Assembly: GCA_965240325.2 (NCBI GenBank)
Contig: OZ251223.1
Location: 2,294,001-2,358,000, forward strand
Direction of reading: 5' to 3'
DNA length: 64,000 nucleotides
DNA from: Rebecca billardiae RCC1528
Taxonomy: Eukaryota > Protista > Haptophyta
Part shown: in pieces, positions 35,969 through 53,514 of the stretch
How the letters are laid out: each line of letters starts with the position of its first letter
Numbering within the stretch: position 1 is the stretch's first letter
The notes under the pieces: model-generated
Told to the model about the DNA's origin: nothing
Database searches by the model: none
The model's input: only the letters and a program-made list of their open reading frames with translations
Program-made: the position numbers and the translations under genes

Positions 35969-37729
35969 TCAGCCGTGGCACCCGCCCTGACCCCTGCAGC
36001 ATTGGTCGTCTGTGTGGTGCCTCGCAGCTCGATCTGCGGCCTGCACGCGCTCCTGGATCGCCTCGCGGTCGTAGCCCTCGTCCCACAACTTGCGCTTGAA
36101 GTCGTCCGTCAGGATCTCAAGCGCCTCGCCCAGCTGCTTGAACTGCTCCTCGGCCACGCGCTTGGCCTCCTCGTCGCCCGCAGGCGCCTTGTCTGGGTGC
36201 AGCTCGAGCGCGCGCAGCTTGTACGCCTGCTTGATCTCGGGGGTGGAGGCGACGGTGGGCACCCTGAGCAGCGCGTACAGGTCGGGCCGACGCATCTTGC
36301 GCACCTCGAAGTTCGCCCGCTGGAACGCGTGGCTGATCTGCGCGTCGTGCCCGTACAGCTTCTGCAGCTCGCGCAGCCCGTCGAGCGCCTCCTCGTGCCG
36401 GCCGAGCGCGTGCAGCGCGGACGCGCGCGTGAGCGCCGCGGGCTTGCACTCGTTCTCCGAGCCGTACAGCGCCTTGGCGCAGTCGGCCAGGCACTTGTCA
36501 AACTCCTTCAGCCGCAGGTACGCCGCCGCGCGCTCAGCGAACAGCATCGCGTGCAGCGGCGCGCGCATCGGCGGGTCGGCGACGCTGATGGCCTCGCTCG
36601 TCAGCTGGACGGCCTGCGTGAAGTTGCGGTTGAACGCGGCGGACTTGGCGCCCTCGCTGGCGCGCTGCACCTTGCGCGCCTTCTTCGCCGCGCCCTGCGT
36701 CATCGAGTCGTCCGGGTCGAGCCGCAGCGCCTCGCTCAGGTGCTTCCACGCCTGCTCGAAGTCGCAGTTCAGATAGAACGCCTGGCCGCGCACCGTGAGA
36801 GCGCCCGCGTGCGTTGGCTGCTCCTTGATGATCGGCCGCGTGCGCCGGATGGCCTGGTCGCACAGGCCGAGGCCGAGCTCGGCGCGCGCGAGCCACAGCT
36901 GCACAGACGGCGCCGCCGTGCGCCCCATCATCGACGCGAAGATGTCCTTCGCGCGCTTGTACTCGCCCGCGTTGAACGCGTCGCGGCCCGCGCGCTCGGC
37001 CTCGACGAGTGCTTCGACCGTGCGCTCGAGCGCGCCTAGCTCCTCGTCCTTGAGCACGACGCTCTCGAGGTGGCGCGCGGCGTCCTCGAAGCGGCCGAGA
37101 GAGACGCACGCGTGCACGAAGAGCGCGTTCGCCGGCGGCAGGGACGCGTCGAGCTTGAGCGCCTGCCTCGCATCGCCGAGTGCCTGCGCGTGCTCGTGGC
37201 ACGCGGCCCACGCCCGGCCGCGCGCGGCGAGCGTCGACGCGTCGGACTGCGCAGCCAGCGCCTTGGAGTAGAGTGTGATCGCCTCCTTGTAGAGCTTCGA
37301 GTCGAACTTGTGGTCCGCCTGCTCGCGCAACCCGGCCGCGATCGAGCCGACGGAGCCCACGCGGTCCTTGCCGACGTGTGACTCCGAGTTGAGCAGGTGC
37401 GAGCTCACCTCGGAGTACTCGCCGCGCCACGAGCACATCGGCAGCGGGCAGCGCACGCGCACGCGGCCGAGCACGCGCCACGCCAGTGGCGATGCTTTGG
37501 CCAGCGGCTGCGGGCTCGTGTGCAGCCTGGCCGAGCACGTCGGGCACTTGTGATTCTGCTCCTGCTCGAGCGAGTGCGCGCCGATCCACTGCTCCACGCA
37601 GCCCGAGCAGAAGACGTGCGAGCACTCGGCGAGGACGGGCGACTCGACGAGCTGCGTGCAGATCACGCAGATGAACTCCTGGTAGTGGTTCTCGTCGGTG
37701 CCCTCGCACAGCTCGAGCGCGTAGCCCAT
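35969..37729 (-). CDS. RING finger + zinc finger + TPR repeats + J-domain protein (RING-DNAJC7-like fusion)
   Basis: C3HC4 RING CVIC..ECSHVFCSGC..CPTC and TRAF-type VRCP..CSWRG....HL. Multiple TPRs. J domain DLYALL...EIKQAYKLRALELHPDK..FKQLGEALEIL. Confidence 0.9.
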   Translation of the reverse strand: MGYALELCEGTDENHYQEFICVICTQLVESPVLAECSHVFCSGCVEQWIGAHSLEQEQNHKCPTCSARLHTSPQPLAKASPLAWRVLGRVRVRCPLPMCSWRGEYSEVSSHLLNSESHVGKDRVGSVGSIAAGLREQADHKFDSKLYKEAITLYSKALAAQSDASTLAARGRAWAACHEHAQALGDARQALKLDASLPPANALFVHACVSLGRFEDAARHLESVVLKDEELGALERTVEALVEAERAGRDAFNAGEYKRAKDIFASMMGRTAAPSVQLWLARAELGLGLCDQAIRRTRPIIKEQPTHAGALTVRGQAFYLNCDFEQAWKHLSEALRLDPDDSMTQGAAKKARKVQRASEGAKSAAFNRNFTQAVQLTSEAISVADPPMRAPLHAMLFAERAAAYLRLKEFDKCLADCAKALYGSENECKPAALTRASALHALGRHEEALDGLRELQKLYGHDAQISHAFQRANFEVRKMRRPDLYALLRVPTVASTPEIKQAYKLRALELHPDKAPAGDEEAKRVAEEQFKQLGEALEILTDDFKRKLWDEGYDREAIQERVQAADRAARHHTDDQCCRGQGGCHG

Positions 37730-38645
37730 CACACCGAACGCGTCCGCCGAGACTGCACGCCGGCACACGAGAAAGAGCGCCCCCACACGCTTTGCCCGCA
37801 CCCGCGTCTGGACGCGAATTCGGGCGTACAAGCAAAGGACCATCAAATGGTCCTTGGTACAAGTACTGTTGCCTGAGCTTGTGTGCGTCTCTTATTCTTA
37901 GTAAACTGTAACCTGCTTGCAGTGCTTGCTGCGCACGCGCGAGTTCGCAGTGCTTTCGCACCCCTCCCACGGGACCGATGAACGGGTGGCCCGCCGGCGC
38001 GGCTTTTCGTCCCTGTATTCTTGGGCCGACGGATAGCGCGGAGGTCGCGAGGGGCACATGCGCGGCACGGGAATGTCGCTGCTCACGAGCCTGTCTATGA
38101 TACTGTACACCAGATCTTCATTGCATCAGCACCGCCATCAACTCAACGCCGTCGGTAGTGGTAGGGTGCTGCCCGCCGGAGGCCGCAGTGTGTACCGCGG
38201 CAGACCGGCCCGTGCCCGGACGTGACTACCGGCGTGGCGTGTGGGTGGTGGCGGCGGCGGCGGTGGCACGGGGGCAGCTCGAAGAGCAGGGCGACTGTGC
38301 ATGTGACGGGACGCCCATCAGCTGCCTATCGCCACAAGGTCGGCAAGAAGGGACACTTCGACCGCTCGTCACTCGCGCGTCGTCATTGCACCGAAGCGGT
38401 CGGCACGATGGCGACGCAGAAAGCCAGACGAAACTGAGAATACTGCACGGTGCACAAGTACCCCCATACTGGCGCTGCTCACCACACTGGTAAGTACTTC
38501 GTCACAGTTATACTTACCCACTAACGTGTACCGCCCTTGACTCCACTATGGAAAGTGGTTGTGAGAGTTCGGGGCGGGCTTTTCCCAACCTACCCAACGA
38601 CGACGGAGCAAGCTCCGGCCAACATCCGCCCCGGCCGACCGCTGC

Positions 38646-43290: not shown

Positions 43291-46200
43291 TTACACTGTC
43301 AGTGTCAACTCCGGCGGCCTCCGGCACCGTGCCGGCGTGCCGCGCTCCAAATCCTTCGCCACCGCTGGCTCCACGGCGTCGTTGACCTTGATCTCAACGG
43401 GCGTCCCTGGCGCCGGTGCCGCCTCCGTCTCCGACTCGGGTAAGGAGCCCTGGAAGGAGCGCTCGAGCTCGGTCTCCCTCTGCACCGCCGGGAGGAGCGC
43501 GCGCACCTCGGTGTTCACGCGCGCCGGGCCGGCGAGACCAATGGCGTGGGCGATCGCCTTCCGCTCGATCACGGCGCCATCCGCGGCGTCGAGGGGGGCT
43601 GGGTGGGTGGCCGCGGCGTAGGCGATGTGGAACGCGTCCACCGCCGCGATTGCCGCGCTGCGCTCACTGTCGGTCTCGCCGACGACGACCACCTCGACGT
43701 CAGCGAGCGCGGCGCCGCTCGCGCGCCACGCGAGCAGCCGGCCGACAAACGGAAGCTGCTCGAGCAGCGAGGGCGACACGAGGCAGAGCAGCTTGCGGGA
43801 GCGGCAGAGAGCCACCACCTCGTGGGCGAGGAGCTGCTGCCGCCGGAGGTAGGGGTCCGCGCAGAGCACGTCGATCCACACGCGCGGCCAGGCCCCGTGC
43901 GCGGCCCTGTGCGCGCGCGCCCAGCGCTGCAGCGCGGCCGTGCGCAGCTCGGCCGGGTCGGTCGGCGAGTGCAGCACGTAGTAATCGATCTTCTCGGGAT
44001 TGAGCAGCCGCGAGTCCGTCACGTCGACCGGCGTCGTCGAGAGCAGAATCGAGCGACCGGCGACGCCGCTCGACGCCGCCTTGCTGTTCCAGCCCGCCTT
44101 GCCGTGGCCACGTTTCGGGCTCGCGAGCATCATTGCCGGGAGGCGGGAGGCTCGGGTCGGGTGTGCCGTGGGTGTGCTCATAGGACTGACAGAGCTGCTG
44201 TCGCTGCGCTGCAAGCGCAACAGCTGCGGGCCCGACTGCACGGCGGCCGCGGGCTTCGTCAGGCTGCGCATCGCTGCCTCGTCGAGCTCGACGGAGCGGA
44301 GCGAGCGGAGGGCTTCTGGGACGAGGCGCCACGGCTCGACCACTTCGCCCGTGCCGTAGCCGACGAGCGGCGCGAGCGCGCACACCAGGTGCTGCTTCTC
44401 GCCGGAGGCGGCGCGGTCGATGAGCGCGCACACGGACGCCCGCACGGGCGGCAGCAGGAGCACGACCCCCAGCCAGAGCGCGAAGTTCGCGGTGAAGATC
44501 ACGAGCGGCACGAAGTGCGGCGAGTACGGCACCCCGCTCATGCCCTCGTGGCCGCAGCGCCACGAGATGAGCGCGACGTACGGCACGCCGAGGGTGGCGG
44601 TCAGCACGCACGTCCACAGCCAGAGCGCGTGCAGCCGCATGTCCTGCGCGACCATCGGCGACACGTCGCGCGTGCGCCACCACTCGCGCGCCAGGAGAGC
44701 GTTGGAGATGAGCACCGACAGCGCGCCGAGGACGACCCACGCCGGGCTGACCACGCTCATGACCGGCGGCGGCCGGATGTAGCAGAACATGTAGGCCTTG
44801 GGCTCGTGCGCGAGCTGCGACACCGCGGCCTTGAGGAGGATCGCGGCGAAGCCGAACATGTTGATGGAGCCGATGGTCGCGATGAGCGTGGTGGCGCGCA
44901 TGTGCGACGCGATGGGCTGCAGCGCGAGCAGGCCGAGCACCCACGCGTTGAGGATCGCCGCCGCCGCGACGATGCCGACGGCGTGCATCCGCTCGTATGC
45001 GCGCACGTCCGACAGGCCCGGCTGCGGCTCAAACGAGGTCCAGCTGTAGACGGCCATGCCCGCTGCGCACAGCGTGATGCAGATGGTCGCCGCAACGCGC
45101 GTCACGCGCTGCAGCCGCGTGCGCGTTGCGCCCAGCGAGCAGTCGAGCAGCTCGATGATCTCCGCGCTCGAGAGAATGTGGTTCCCGCCCACGTCGCGAC
45201 GCTTGGCCTTGGGCGAGGCAGAGCCCTCCACCTCGGGGGCCACGCGCGCACCGGACGCCAGCTTGAGCCTCCAGTCGTGCCCGCTGTCCTCCGCCACGGC
45301 GCCATCGGTCGACGACGTGCGCTGCAACCCGCCGCGTAGCTCGCGGTGGTCGGCCAAGCGCGCATGCGCGATCCGGCGGTTGACCCGCGGCGTGAGCGGC
45401 GCGCTGCTGAGCACCACGTCGTGGTACACGTTGCGCAGCAGCTGCACGACGTGCGTCACGTCGAGCGCGTGCTCGGGCGCCAGCAGGAGCATGTGCTCCG
45501 CCTTGGGCGCCGAGGGTGAGAGCCGCACGTCGGCGCGCTCGCAGCGCGCGACGGCGTCCGCCGGCTTGCCCGGCAGCACGCTCATCAGCGCGACGACGTC
45601 GTACGGCTTGACGTAGCCGTTGAGGTACGGAATGATGTCCGTGCTCCCGTCGAGATCGCCGAGATCGCGCCGCTCAAAGCCGTCGCGGTCGATGCCGCAG
45701 AACGTCTCGAAGAACCACTGCTTCGTGCAGCGCGCGGGCAGATGGCCCGCGCAGAGCTTCACCCACAGGCCCGCGAGTCCGAGAAACTGTGCGTTCGCGA
45801 GGTACGCCATCACCGGCGACCGCGTGCGCTCGGCGAACGAGCGCGCGAGCTGCATCGGCAGCAGCGGCACCGCGTGCCGCGAGACGGCAGTGAGCGGCAG
45901 CCCTTTGCCAAAGCAAAAGTCGTACACGGCCGTGGCGGCCTCGCGGTCGAACTCGTTATTCACGCTCGTGTCAGGCGCCCACCGCTGCGCCGCCTCGTCA
46001 AACTCGAGCCCGGCCTGCACCGCGATGCGCATCACCTTGGCCAGCACGAGATCGGGCTCGCGTGCGAGCAGCTCGGCCACGTCGCTGAGGCCTGCGATGC
46101 AGACGACCACGACCGCCTTCGCCCGGGCAGACTGGAGCACGCGGACGAGCGACATGTGCGCGGACGTCTCGAGACGCGAGTCGTCCACGCTCGCGTACCC

Positions 46201-46581
46201 CTTGAGCGCGTACTCGTGCGCGACTGGCTCGTAAGGCTTGCCCTCGCTGCCAATCGCGACCGGCACCGCGCGCACGTCGATCGCGTCCAGCAGGCAGCGT
46301 GCCAGCCTCGCGCGGTTCCTGGCCTGCTGTCCACCGGTCGTAACAACGAGCCGCAGATCGATGTCGCCGCGCTTGTGCAGCGTCCCCGCGATCAGAATCG
46401 CCTGAAGGCAGGGCGGGAGGAGGCGCGGATGTGAGAGAGGCGCGGCGGGTGGTCCGGTGGTCGCCTGTTCGGGAGCGTGAGAAGCTGGGCGTCGGCGCCT
46501 CACCTTCACATCGTCAGGGTCAGGTCCCGGATCCGTGACCAGAACGATCTGTTGCGCGCGCCCCGCGCCTCGACTCGGCAT
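43291..46581 (-). CDS. XopQ/HopQ1-like nucleoside-hydrolase domain + ~6 TM helices + degenerate TIR-like domain; intron 46402-46503
   Basis: LVTDPGPDPDDVK, CIAGLSDVAELL, NNEFDREAA..VY, YL..AQ..L.GLW, WFFETF and PYDVVAL. Six hydrophobic segments at ~45100-44455. DYYVLHSPTD..WA..PRVWIDVLC..RKLLCLVSPS forms the TIR-like part. Confidence 0.85.
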   Translation of the reverse strand: MPSRGAGRAQQIVLVTDPGPDPDDVKVRRRRPASHAPEQATTGPPAAPLSHPRLLPPCLQAILIAGTLHKRGDIDLRLVVTTGGQQARNRARLARCLLDAIDVRAVPVAIGSEGKPYEPVAHEYALKGYASVDDSRLETSAHMSLVRVLQSARAKAVVVVCIAGLSDVAELLAREPDLVLAKVMRIAVQAGLEFDEAAQRWAPDTSVNNEFDREAATAVYDFCFGKGLPLTAVSRHAVPLLPMQLARSFAERTRSPVMAYLANAQFLGLAGLWVKLCAGHLPARCTKQWFFETFCGIDRDGFERRDLGDLDGSTDIIPYLNGYVKPYDVVALMSVLPGKPADAVARCERADVRLSPSAPKAEHMLLLAPEHALDVTHVVQLLRNVYHDVVLSSAPLTPRVNRRIAHARLADHRELRGGLQRTSSTDGAVAEDSGHDWRLKLASGARVAPEVEGSASPKAKRRDVGGNHILSSAEIIELLDCSLGATRTRLQRVTRVAATICITLCAAGMAVYSWTSFEPQPGLSDVRAYERMHAVGIVAAAAILNAWVLGLLALQPIASHMRATTLIATIGSINMFGFAAILLKAAVSQLAHEPKAYMFCYIRPPPVMSVVSPAWVVLGALSVLISNALLAREWWRTRDVSPMVAQDMRLHALWLWTCVLTATLGVPYVALISWRCGHEGMSGVPYSPHFVPLVIFTANFALWLGVVLLLPPVRASVCALIDRAASGEKQHLVCALAPLVGYGTGEVVEPWRLVPEALRSLRSVELDEAAMRSLTKPAAAVQSGPQLLRLQRSDSSSVSPMSTPTAHPTRASRLPAMMLASPKRGHGKAGWNSKAASSGVAGRSILLSTTPVDVTDSRLLNPEKIDYYVLHSPTDPAELRTAALQRWARAHRAAHGAWPRVWIDVLCADPYLRRQQLLAHEVVALCRSRKLLCLVSPSLLEQLPFVGRLLAWRASGAALADVEVVVVGETDSERSAAIAAVDAFHIAYAAATHPAPLDAADGAVIERKAIAHAIGLAGPARVNTEVRALLPAVQRETELERSFQGSLPESETEAAPAPGTPVEIKVNDAVEPAVAKDLERGTPARCRRPPELTLTV

Positions 46582-51730: not shown

Positions 51731-52538
51731 TCACCGGGAGGAGATAAGTCGGGCGCGCTCCTGGGCGCGATGACGATGTGACGGCGAGCCCAGGCGACGC
51801 GGAGGCCTGGTGAGATCCAGGAAGGTCGCCGCGGCGGCGGGCGAGCCCGACGCGCGCTGCCTGGACTCGTGCCGCGGGCTGGTGCCAGCCGAGCCGACGC
51901 CGTTGGACGCCTGCTGCACCGCCTCGCCCGTGAGCTCCAAGTCGCTGCTGCCATCGTCATCGAACGAGCGCGAGCGATGGAGAAGCGAGCTACCCTCCCC
52001 CGGCAGGCTGGAGACCGACGCCCCACCCGACGAGCTGAAGCTCAGCCGGCGCAGCCTCGCGTACCACACGTCGCGGTCGCCGTGATGCTCGGCGGCGGCC
52101 GCCGCCTGCGTCTTGAGCACATTGTACGAGAGCAGGCCTGTCGAGCAGGTGATGAAGCCAACCGCGCGCACCCACGTCAGATCGTCGCCGAAGAGGATCA
52201 CGGCGCCGATGATGGTCATCAGCTGCTTGAAGATGCCGATCAGAGACATTGAGAGCGACGAGGTGAGCTCGACGAGGTAGTACTTGCTCAGCTGCAGCAA
52301 GAAGGCAATCAGGGAGACTGCGAGCAGGTACGCCACGAGCCGCTGCCGGTGGTCGGGGTCCGTCGCCCACTCCGAGCGCAGGAAGGGCTGCAGCTCGAAG
52401 GAGATCGCGAACGGCACGCAGGTGATGATCGTGACCGGCGTCACGAGGAGGATCGTGCCCAGAGGCGACGTCTTCTTCGGAGCCGGTGCACTGTCGCCCT
52501 TGCGCTGGTCGGCCGCGCTCGCCGTGTCGGATCCGCCG

Positions 52539-52570
<32 letters not shown>

Positions 52571-53254
52571 CCCGACAACGGTGCCCGTCACCGGCTCCGC
52601 GATCCGCTGTGCCGCTGGCTCCTCCAGCTGCCCCTCCGACGGCACAGCCGGGACGGCCGATGGGATGTGCTGCATCATCTTTTGCACGAGCACCCATCGC
52701 AGCCCTGCGACCGTGCAAGAGAGGGTGCACACGATAATGCCCGCCCAGTGGAACTTCACCTCGCCGGTGGAGGCGAGCGCGATGCCGAGGCAGACCGTGA
52801 GGATGGAGCAGATCTTCGCAGGCTCCATGTCCTCCAGCCCGGCGCACAGCGAGAAGGCGAGCACGAACGACGGGATGGTGCCGCGCAGCATTGTGAAGAA
52901 CGTCACGTTGAGGTACTGCAGCGACCAGTTGGCGGTGCCGATGTCCAGCCCCGTGCACATGCCCGTCGGCAGCGCCTGGCGCAGAAACAGCTCCCACGAG
53001 ATGCTCGGCGGGTGGATGATGCCGAACAGCGTGAGGAGGGCGGTCCATACCCACAACACCAAGTTGGTGATGAGCACGGTCATGAACGGGTACCCAAACC
53101 GCTCAGTGGTCAGCATGAACTTGTTCGCGTAGACCAGGCTCATGCCGAGCACGTACCACGACGCGATCGTTGCAAGGATCCGCGCACGGTGCGCGCTGAC
53201 CACAGCTGACCTCTCGCGCGGACTGCTGAGGCCCCCGTGGTCAGCATGGCGCAT
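51731..53254 (-). CDS. Nucleotide-sugar/triose-phosphate transporter family, SLC35C2-like; the reading frame stays open upstream of this ATG
   Basis: PTGMCTGLDIGTANWSLQYL, FVLAFS..GLE, AGLRWVLVQKMMQ, LVELTSSLSMSLIGIFKQ, and ~10 TM helices. Confidence 0.9.
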
Positions 53255-53514
53255 CAGCGCCTCTGCGCCGATGTGGCGTGTGCCGGCGGAAGCCGCCGGC
53301 GGGGGCCCTCCACGCGGCGTGCTGGCGGATCTCCACCCGCGGGCAGCCCGCCCGCGGCCGTCAGCGGCGTCGCACGCCGGAGCACGGCCCAGCAGCTCTC
53401 CCGCCGACGCCACGGGAAAGCGCCGCGCGAGGCGCGGGTGTGCAGCAGATCTGCAGATCTGGCACTTTGTTGTGTGCGCCGACGCCCGGGCCGGAATATA
53501 TCGCGCGTCGTACT

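Follow-up and report, generated by a model that had tools for sequence, protein, structure and literature searches.

A XopQ-type hydrolase domain joined through a six-helix membrane block to a divergent TIR-fold domain in the haptophyte Rebecca billardiae

Introduction

The closest described counterparts of the protein considered here, which is encoded on the minus strand at 43291-46581 of a 64,000-nucleotide window (the whole stretch of DNA that was analysed) from the haptophyte Rebecca billardiae RCC1528, are XopQ, HopQ1, and RipB, type III effectors of bacteria pathogenic to plants that belong to the HopQ1-like clan within the nucleoside hydrolase superfamily, and the enzymatic TIR domains. 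The protein carries an N-terminal domain of XopQ type (N-domain), a block of six predicted transmembrane (TM) helices, and a C-terminal domain of TIR fold (C-domain). A recent report (a 2026 preprint) describes XopQ as a hydrolase of 2'cADPR, an isomer of cyclic ADP-ribose (cADPR) produced by TIR domains, that shuts down plant TIR immunity. XopQ hydrolyses 2'cADPR to ADP-ribose (ADPR) with near diffusion-limited efficiency, and does so as a specific 2'cADPR-to-ADPR O-glycosidase, with no cleavage of 3'cADPR, cADPR, phosphoribosyl-AMP (pRib-AMP), or 2',3'-cyclic nucleoside monophosphates (2',3'-cNMPs). Mutation of two conserved Asp residues removes this activity, and both XopQ and HopQ1 are inactive on nucleosides in vitro (bioRxiv 10.64898/2026.06.15.732069). 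The degradation of 2',3'-cNMPs by XopQ, on which the first-pass annotation of the locus drew, was not reproduced in this newest work.

The algal N-domain is alike in fold to the XopQ/HopQ1/RipB effectors (PDB 4kl0, 4p5f, and 7jlu) over its full length, and has the NN..D, YL..Q..L.GLW, and WFF.TF blocks and the DxxxDxDD motif in common with them. In contrast to the effectors, the algal protein lacks the N-terminal secretion or 14-3-3 region, comes from a eukaryotic gene with an intron, and has its hydrolase part fused to a membrane block and to a TIR domain. The C-domain resembles in fold the enzymatic TIR domains of plant TNL and TIR-only proteins, SARM1, AbTir, Thoeris ThsB, and SPARTA TIR-APAZ, with the algal family consensus bearing the strand-A D.(F/Y)(V/I).HS and the alphaC RLWCxxE motifs, the Glu in register; however, the WxDxxC(I/A)D(Q/P) block of the family is nearer to HET than to classical TIR, and the catalytic Glu is an Arg in the window copy. 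HET (PF06985), a fungal cell-death domain remotely homologous to TIR (PMC10890737), has a WIDxxCI.Q-like block in common with the algal C-domain, but occurs in other taxa, the algal domain being membrane-anchored and C-terminal.

The combination of such domains also has parallels. Fusions of a signal maker to a signal breaker, such as GGDEF-EAL, and the degraders or sponges of Thoeris and plant TIR signals follow the same logic with unrelated folds, whereas the algal degrader would be host-encoded, covalently fused to a putative generator, and found in a eukaryote. In maker-breaker fusions such as GGDEF-EAL, one of the domains is often degenerate, and such dead copies serve as regulators. TRPM2, a six-TM protein gated by ADPR via the enzyme-derived NUDT9-H domain, likewise joins a six-TM block to a domain from an ADPR-handling enzyme family, however the match of the algal TM block to its S1-S4 bundle (Z 6.5) is within noise, and the algal block has no pore signature. 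In the literature searched, no paper describing this pavlovophyte family and no paper connecting XopQ or HopQ1 with haptophytes was found, and the hydrolase-TIR fusion goes unmentioned in the eukaryotic TIR atlas.

Results

Overall architecture and gene structure

The minus strand between 43291 and 46581 forms a single uninterrupted open reading frame (ORF) of 1096 codons, with a GC content of 70-74% compared with 57-58% in the flanks, and a spliced product of 1062 amino acids (aa). Its parts and motifs are as follows, with the evidence for each in brackets; pLDDT denotes the predicted local distance difference test.

46504..46581, minus strand: exon 1, encoding aa 1-26 from the start codon and including TDPGPDPDD (46510-46536)
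46402..46503, minus strand: in-frame intron of 102 nt, GTGAGG...TTCAG (sequence and homologue comparison)
43291..46401, minus strand: exon 2, the remaining protein and the stop codon
45445..46554, minus strand: XopQ/HopQ1-type nucleoside-hydrolase-fold domain, spliced aa ~10-345, the span including the intron (Pfam, NCBIfam, PDB, tree)
44455..45105, minus strand: six-helix transmembrane block, spliced aa 459-675 (hydropathy, AlphaFold2)
44257..44451, minus strand: conserved juxtamembrane helical segment after TM6, with ALAPLVGYGTGE at 44344-44379 (alignment, AlphaFold2)
44002..44238, minus strand: low-complexity linker, predicted to be disordered (pLDDT, homologue comparison)
43468..44010, minus strand: TIR-fold domain, unspliced aa ~858-1038 (AlphaFold2, Foldseek, VIA-align, profile)
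46510-46536, minus strand: TDPGPDPDD, unspliced aa 16-24
Unspliced aa 207-212, minus strand: VNNEFD
Unspliced aa 289-294, minus strand: WFFETF
Unspliced aa 866-872, minus strand: DYYVLHS
Unspliced aa 900-910, minus strand: RVWIDVLCADP
43738-43758, minus strand: QLPFVGR, unspliced aa 942-948, degenerate alphaC catalytic segment, RLWCxxE in relatives (165-member column counts, alignment)

The stretch 46402-46503 is read as an in-frame intron because its 34 codons are missing from 4/4 full-length homologues, which run from ...DDVK directly into A(L/I)L..., and because the match of the N-domain hidden Markov model (HMM) to the six-frame translation breaks exactly there. The first-pass annotation spoke of one spliced ORF; the single gene frame holds, whilst the splicing is limited to this one in-frame intron, the ORF itself being continuous. 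The motifs that it named were all located where it had placed them. No second copy of either the N- or the C-domain was detected in the 64-kb window with the domain HMMs on a six-frame translation. The species itself is not represented in the sequence databases, with the best full-length identity to any relative standing at 33%.

The N-terminal domain

Pfam assigns the N-domain solely to IU_nuc_hydro (PF01156), with 34.9 bits, barely over the cutoff of 34.2, and some entries among the relatives are named "inosine/uridine-preferring nucleoside hydrolase". On these grounds the protein could be taken for an ordinary salvage enzyme, that is, a membrane-anchored purine/pyrimidine nucleoside hydrolase whose TIR-like part serves only for oligomerisation. 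The closer comparisons point elsewhere. The best solved structures for the window protein are those of Xanthomonas oryzae XopQ (4kl0 and 4p5f, E 5e-17 over aa 57-339), and the only NCBIfam match is the XopQ model (NF041355, 94.2 bits), for which the equivalog cutoff of 500 bits is not reached. A profile of 22 family sequences matches the XopQ structures 4p5f, 4kl0, and 7jlu at ~1e-39 over positions 13-342, whereas the best canonical inosine/uridine-preferring nucleoside hydrolase (IU-NH) reaches 1e-9, with the alignment confined to the N-terminal half. The HMM scores follow the same division (124-131 bits for XopQ/HopQ1 versus 25 for RihA), and tblastn of one family member against 72,556 plasmids gave seven matches at ~26% identity, six annotated as hopQ1/xopQ and one unannotated.

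The calcium motif separates the two groups further. In a joint alignment, the window reads TDPGPDPDD and XopQ/HopQ1 read (T/S)DPNKDPDD, both DxxxDxDD, while the E. coli enzymes RihA/B/C have the canonical D.DPG.DD, the motif of the alga and the effectors being the longer one by two residues. Replacement of the canonical DxDxxxDD by DxxxDxDD is a mark of HopQ1-like proteins (PMC11685791). The motif is intact in 84/87 family N-domains, with the window copy among them. In a likelihood tree rooted on RihA/B/C, which amount to just three canonical enzymes, all from E. coli, the XopQ-type sequences together occupy one branch with 100% support. Within it, the haptophyte domains form a single clade (SH-like approximate likelihood ratio test, 90), sister to a bacterial clade in which pathogen effectors (95) and environmental homologues (98) are joined at 96. 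The bacterial stretches L036, L052, and L054, all matched by tblastn and containing in-frame stops, entered this tree unrepaired, with the stops as gaps; L036 comes from the crop pathogen Paracidovorax citrulli.

The profile, the HMM scores, the plasmid search, the motif, and the tree thus bear out the earlier proposal that the N-domain is nearer to XopQ/HopQ1/RipB than to canonical IU-hydrolases, and the profile E-values, the motif, and the tree led us to reject its assignment as an ordinary IU-nucleoside hydrolase. As the domain is not nested among the effectors and scores below the equivalog cutoff, it is, on sequence grounds, XopQ-type and a distant member of the clan, but not an orthologue of the XopQ effectors. 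A salvage role is very unlikely: the domain sides with XopQ-type proteins against RihA/B/C and the other IU-NH enzymes of known structure, it carries DxxxDxDD where canonical enzymes have DxDxxxDD, and the preprint reports XopQ and HopQ1 to be inactive on nucleosides in vitro.

The C-terminal domain and the lost glutamate

An AlphaFold2 model of the C-domain, built from a 26-sequence alignment, has a pLDDT of 90.4. The best 30 rows returned by Foldseek are all TIR chains (SPARTA, RPPT, RUN1, MyD88, RPP1, and others), with probabilities of 0.77-1.00 and E values of 4.9e-3 or weaker, and with VIA-align 50/50 among the matches listed are TIR domains (Z 8-10.7), AbTir 7uxu aligning over 119 residues with a root-mean-square deviation of 3.1 and a Z of 10.7. 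The C-domain sequence profile has the TIR domains of TLR15 and SIGIRR as its best PDB matches (E ~0.1), the alignment being in register at strand A and in the strand C-helix C segment, where the family ...cvvELY lies over CQYELYF of TLR15. Pfam TIR_2 detects 2/26 fused members (E 0.0076 or weaker) and 9/41 unfused relatives (1.7e-4 or weaker), and HET (PF06985) gives weak matches in 6/41 unfused relatives with six TM helices and a TIR domain (6TM-TIR; best E 0.0097) and none for the window copy. An hhalign comparison of the C-domain profile with one bacterial TIR sequence gave a probability of 1.7%, a single-sequence template being too weak. The model and its structural matches agree with the TIR-like domain of the first-pass annotation, and indicate that the C-domain is a divergent member of the TIR superfamily.

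In the alphaC segment of the window copy, QLPFVGR stands in place of RLWCxxE, with Glu replaced by Arg, and with Trp and Cys, three and four positions upstream of it, replaced by Pro and Phe. The Arg sits in the column that holds the alphaC Glu of the relatives, so that the catalytic Glu is lost, as had been proposed. Relatives with an intact Glu, which the earlier annotation suggested seeking, are plentiful: counted in the helix-C column over 165 family C-domains, the Glu is kept in 34/54 members with a XopQ-type domain and in 89/111 without one (unfused 6TM-TIR). Set against the 84/87 for the hydrolase motif, these counts place the tighter constraint in this family on the hydrolase half. The window TIR domain keeps the other conserved positions, namely the strand-A Asp, the His-Ser pair, and the W-x-D-x-x-C block.

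Replacement of three neighbouring conserved residues of the TIR alphaC motif might instead mark a decaying or redundant paralogue that has lost its TIR function and is drifting with no specific role of its own. Such drift would also suit the fairly long end branch of the window copy on the C-domain tree (0.88 versus a median of 0.5), the many paralogues in the relatives of a large and fast-evolving family, and the lack of any listed RNA run for the genome. However, the 1062-codon frame is intact and the intron position conserved, the N-domain (488-540 bits) and the C-domain (190-218 bits) have HMM scores in the range of other family members, the AlphaFold2 fold is confident with the remaining conserved TIR positions kept, and roughly one fused member in three lacks the Glu, a recurrence suggesting that this state is functional and tolerated. 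A drifting paralogue is therefore quite unlikely.

Distribution and origin of the fusion

Of the 39 relatives returned by a first search, almost all come from Pavlovales (Diacronema lutheri, Pavlovales sp. CCMP2436, and the MMETSP/JGI transcript sets), and ~30/39 have the N-domain, TM block, and C-domain in the same order. The search for this architecture in other algae, proposed with the first description of the locus, thus finds it recurring in Diacronema, Pavlovales sp. CCMP2436, and Pavlova gyrans. Transcript-level support for the fusion comes from transcripts of the relatives, with the full architecture present in a Pavlova gyrans MMETSP transcript marked complete (P0008) and the N + 6TM + C order in others labelled complete, such as P0012.

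These observations bear on whether the gene model joins two or three adjacent genes, stop codons being rare in DNA of 70% GC. Spurious ORFs of up to 597 codons in other frames, and the want of a listed RNA run for the genome, would leave room for such an artefact; it is nevertheless most improbable, as the N + 6TM + C order recurs in dozens of proteins from several species and in the complete transcripts of relatives, and the three parts lie in one frame with conserved linkers. Separate hydrolase and TIR genes were rejected on the same grounds, the fusion being present in ~30/39 relatives and in the complete Pavlova gyrans transcript.

At an E value of 1e-3 or lower, an exhaustive search with the C-domain profile gave 2777 cluster representatives, many of which are proteins of 450-600 aa with a multi-TM block and a C-domain but no hydrolase; the nearest ESM Atlas cluster, with 282 members, is a haptophyte family of this kind. 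On the C-domain tree, fused and unfused architectures part at a split with 100% support, with 47/48 fused rows on one side, and the 16 "unfused" rows inside the fused clade include identical-sequence truncations. This one-sided clustering fits a single origin of the hydrolase-TIR fusion. A word-indexed search with the TM + TIR alignment gave no match, and an ESM Atlas feature search gave no usable match.

Two relatives depart from the common layout, and each may be a variant or a mis-assembly: in P0027 (947 aa) the TIR-like domain precedes the hydrolase domain, and P0039 (866 aa) lacks the TIR and pairs a distant hydrolase domain with TPR repeats. Additionally, a shape search of the ESM Atlas with the 6TM-TIR model of the window copy found, among the nearest haptophyte clusters, two with members carrying Lectin_C (22%) or HNOB (99%). 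If the 6TM block is shared with these clusters, the module may be combined with different input domains; the matches are weak (TM scores of 0.35-0.42).

The membrane block

Hydropathy gives six peaks in spliced aa 459-675. AlphaFold2, applied to the part from the TM block to the C-terminus (52-sequence alignment, mean pLDDT 80), models six long TM helices at a pLDDT of ~70-90, the juxtamembrane segment, the linker, and the TIR domain, so that the "about six TM helices" read from the sequence at first pass are found by both methods. The juxtamembrane segment has the consensus A..A.LLG.G in the 52-sequence alignment and a model pLDDT of ~84-95. The linker, of ~80 residues, has a pLDDT below 50 (model residues 318-396), and varies in length and sequence among homologues. 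With an even number of TM helices, both soluble domains are expected on the same side of the membrane, as had been argued. The further claim that this side is the cytosol is weakly favoured by the Lys and Arg counts (11 in the loops on the side of the N-terminus and six on the opposite side) and by an N-terminus devoid of a hydrophobic stretch; the N- and C-domains may thus face the cytosol.

Comparison of the TM block with known structures by Foldseek and VIA-align, made only as part of the TM-to-C-terminus model, returned generic helical bundles (best non-TIR Z 7.8; Foldseek E 0.15 or weaker). TM2-TM5 (model residues 55-215) match the S1-S4 bundles of the channels TRPV2, Nav1.5, TRPM2, Hv1, and TRPM8 with Z 6.2-6.9, within the stated noise for helical bundles. 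No pore-like signature was found in the block, and the TM region is poorly conserved among homologues.

A different role for the protein, that of a sensor, has to be weighed here. The XopQ-type domain would bind an ADPR-type nucleotide without needing to turn it over, and would thereby govern either the membrane block or the assembly of TIR domains, comparable to the gating of TRPM2 by NUDT9-H, the output of the window copy being the membrane block or scaffolding and not NAD+ cleavage. In its favour, XopQ was crystallised with bound ADPR (4p5f), 37% of fused members do without the TIR Glu, Lectin_C and HNOB in the weakly matching clusters above are typical ligand-binding domains, and TM2-TM5 show the faint channel-like matches. 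The near-invariant Asp motif (84/87) suits an enzyme at least equally well, however, and the matches of the TM block lie within helical-bundle noise, in a poorly conserved region devoid of a pore-like signature. We regard sensing of this kind, and such an output of the window copy, as rather unlikely.

Bacterial loci and neighbouring genes

A scan of prokaryote genomes with haptophyte-only patterns found no relative, while one based on a mixed alignment recovered 47 bacterial loci. XopQ-type genes occur in non-pathogens, among them Myxococcota, Planctomycetota, and Acidobacteria, and in 6/13 environmental loci a NUDIX domain is fused or adjacent to the XopQ-type domain, being fused C-terminally in five and following directly in the sixth (Pfam E 2e-11 to 9e-15). 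The hosts of these NUDIX-linked loci are Myxococcales, Pirellulaceae, Pirellula, Schlesneria, and a Planctomycetales metagenome-assembled genome (MAG), and several of the XopQ-NUDIX proteins bear hydrophobic N-terminal leaders. The loci, together with one in which TIR genes flank the XopQ-type gene, are the following.

L041:7539-9938, plus strand: XopQ-type + NUDIX
L043:635-2695, plus strand: XopQ-type + NUDIX
L046:7845-9935, plus strand: XopQ-type + NUDIX
L047:7683-9944, plus strand: XopQ-type + NUDIX
L049:7986-9971, plus strand: XopQ-type + NUDIX
L052:9112-9936: XopQ-type + NUDIX
L054:7860-8987, plus strand: XopQ-type gene in a gammaproteobacterial MAG
L054:3153-5996, minus strand: TIR-nSTAND1-WD40 gene, flanking the XopQ-type gene
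L054:9239-10393, minus strand: caspase-TIR_2 gene, flanking the XopQ-type gene (Pfam scan; phmmer missed this second TIR neighbour)

As NUDIX is the fold of ADPR pyrophosphatases, the pairing fits ADPR as the product of the XopQ-type domain, and suggests that an ADPR-derived molecule is broken down in two steps. In L054:3153-10393 a lysozyme/YkuD gene is situated between the genes listed, and TIR neighbours occur at one of about a dozen bacterial loci only. These neighbourhoods link the XopQ-type fold to ADPR and TIR as associations, not as proof. A Planctomyces MAG (L048:674-3631) encodes a different fusion, in which the XopQ-type domain is joined with an entire Amidohydro_3 domain (E 1.9e-104).

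In the window, the neighbouring ORFs encode a RING-TPR-DnaJ protein (35969-37846, minus strand) and a TPT (triose-phosphate-transporter-family) protein (51731-53413, minus strand). Both look unrelated, and a functional link to them was rejected.

Discussion

The architecture, the folds, the state of the motifs, and the distribution of the family are established by this analysis. The layout of the family is fixed, with a XopQ-type domain, probably a calcium-dependent glycosidase that faces the cytosol, followed by the six-helix block, the juxtamembrane segment, the linker, and a TIR domain on the same side. The Glu-bearing TIR domains of the family would cleave NAD+ into a cADPR isomer, and the XopQ-type domain would hydrolyse this signal to ADPR, as bacterial XopQ does with 2'cADPR, with a signal maker and a signal breaker held on one polypeptide. 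Diverse eukaryotic TIR domains, those of algae included, have been reported in a preprint to make cADPR isomers.

With its hydrolase motifs intact, and its TIR catalytic segment lost while the fold is kept, the window copy is most likely a hydrolase that terminates the signal. Our tentative reading, to which we give slightly less than an even chance, is that it sits tethered to the membrane and hydrolyses a cADPR isomer made by TIR domains, while its own TIR domain has no catalytic role and is used for assembly. Such a protein would end the signal, and its TIR domain would do no more than offer a surface on which Glu-bearing paralogues or unfused 6TM-TIR proteins could assemble or dock. The substrate, the catalysis, the TIR-TIR docking, and the biological role in this scheme are what we infer from the domain folds and motifs.

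Several points weigh against this interpretation. With a score of 94 bits, far short of the equivalog cutoff of 500, and with ~26% identity, the algal domain may differ from XopQ in substrate specificity, and other algal TIRs are reported to make 3'cADPR, which XopQ does not cleave. Conservation of the Asp motif would also be expected of a domain that does nothing but bind in a calcium-dependent way, as the rival role of a sensor would have it. Furthermore, the Pfam TIR models do not match the window C-domain, the TM block gave no specific fold match, a sequencing-run search lists no RNA runs for this genome, and the docking of the window copy on paralogues is purely conjectural.

A broader version of the signal-terminating hydrolase, which we consider unlikely, would have the family as a self-contained membrane maker-breaker unit for a cADPR isomer, with ADPR made beside a six-helix block that possibly responds to it. 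The dead-TIR copies, the window copy among them, would then be dedicated negative regulators that co-assemble with active paralogues, and the effectors of plant pathogens would have been borrowed from an ancient cellular off-switch of TIR signalling.

Whilst XopQ is known from bacterial effectors, its fold joined to TIR in a distant eukaryote provides independent, "Rosetta-stone" evidence for a functional link between the two. Together with the environmental NUDIX fusions, the algal fusion suggests that the effectors descend from a broader class of enzymes that process ADPR isomers. The dead-TIR copies additionally allow adaptor and enzyme roles of the family TIR domains to be tested directly. 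To our knowledge, haptophytes have no characterised innate immune pathway, and the fusion points to these algae having a TIR-type nucleotide signalling that carries its own off-switch.

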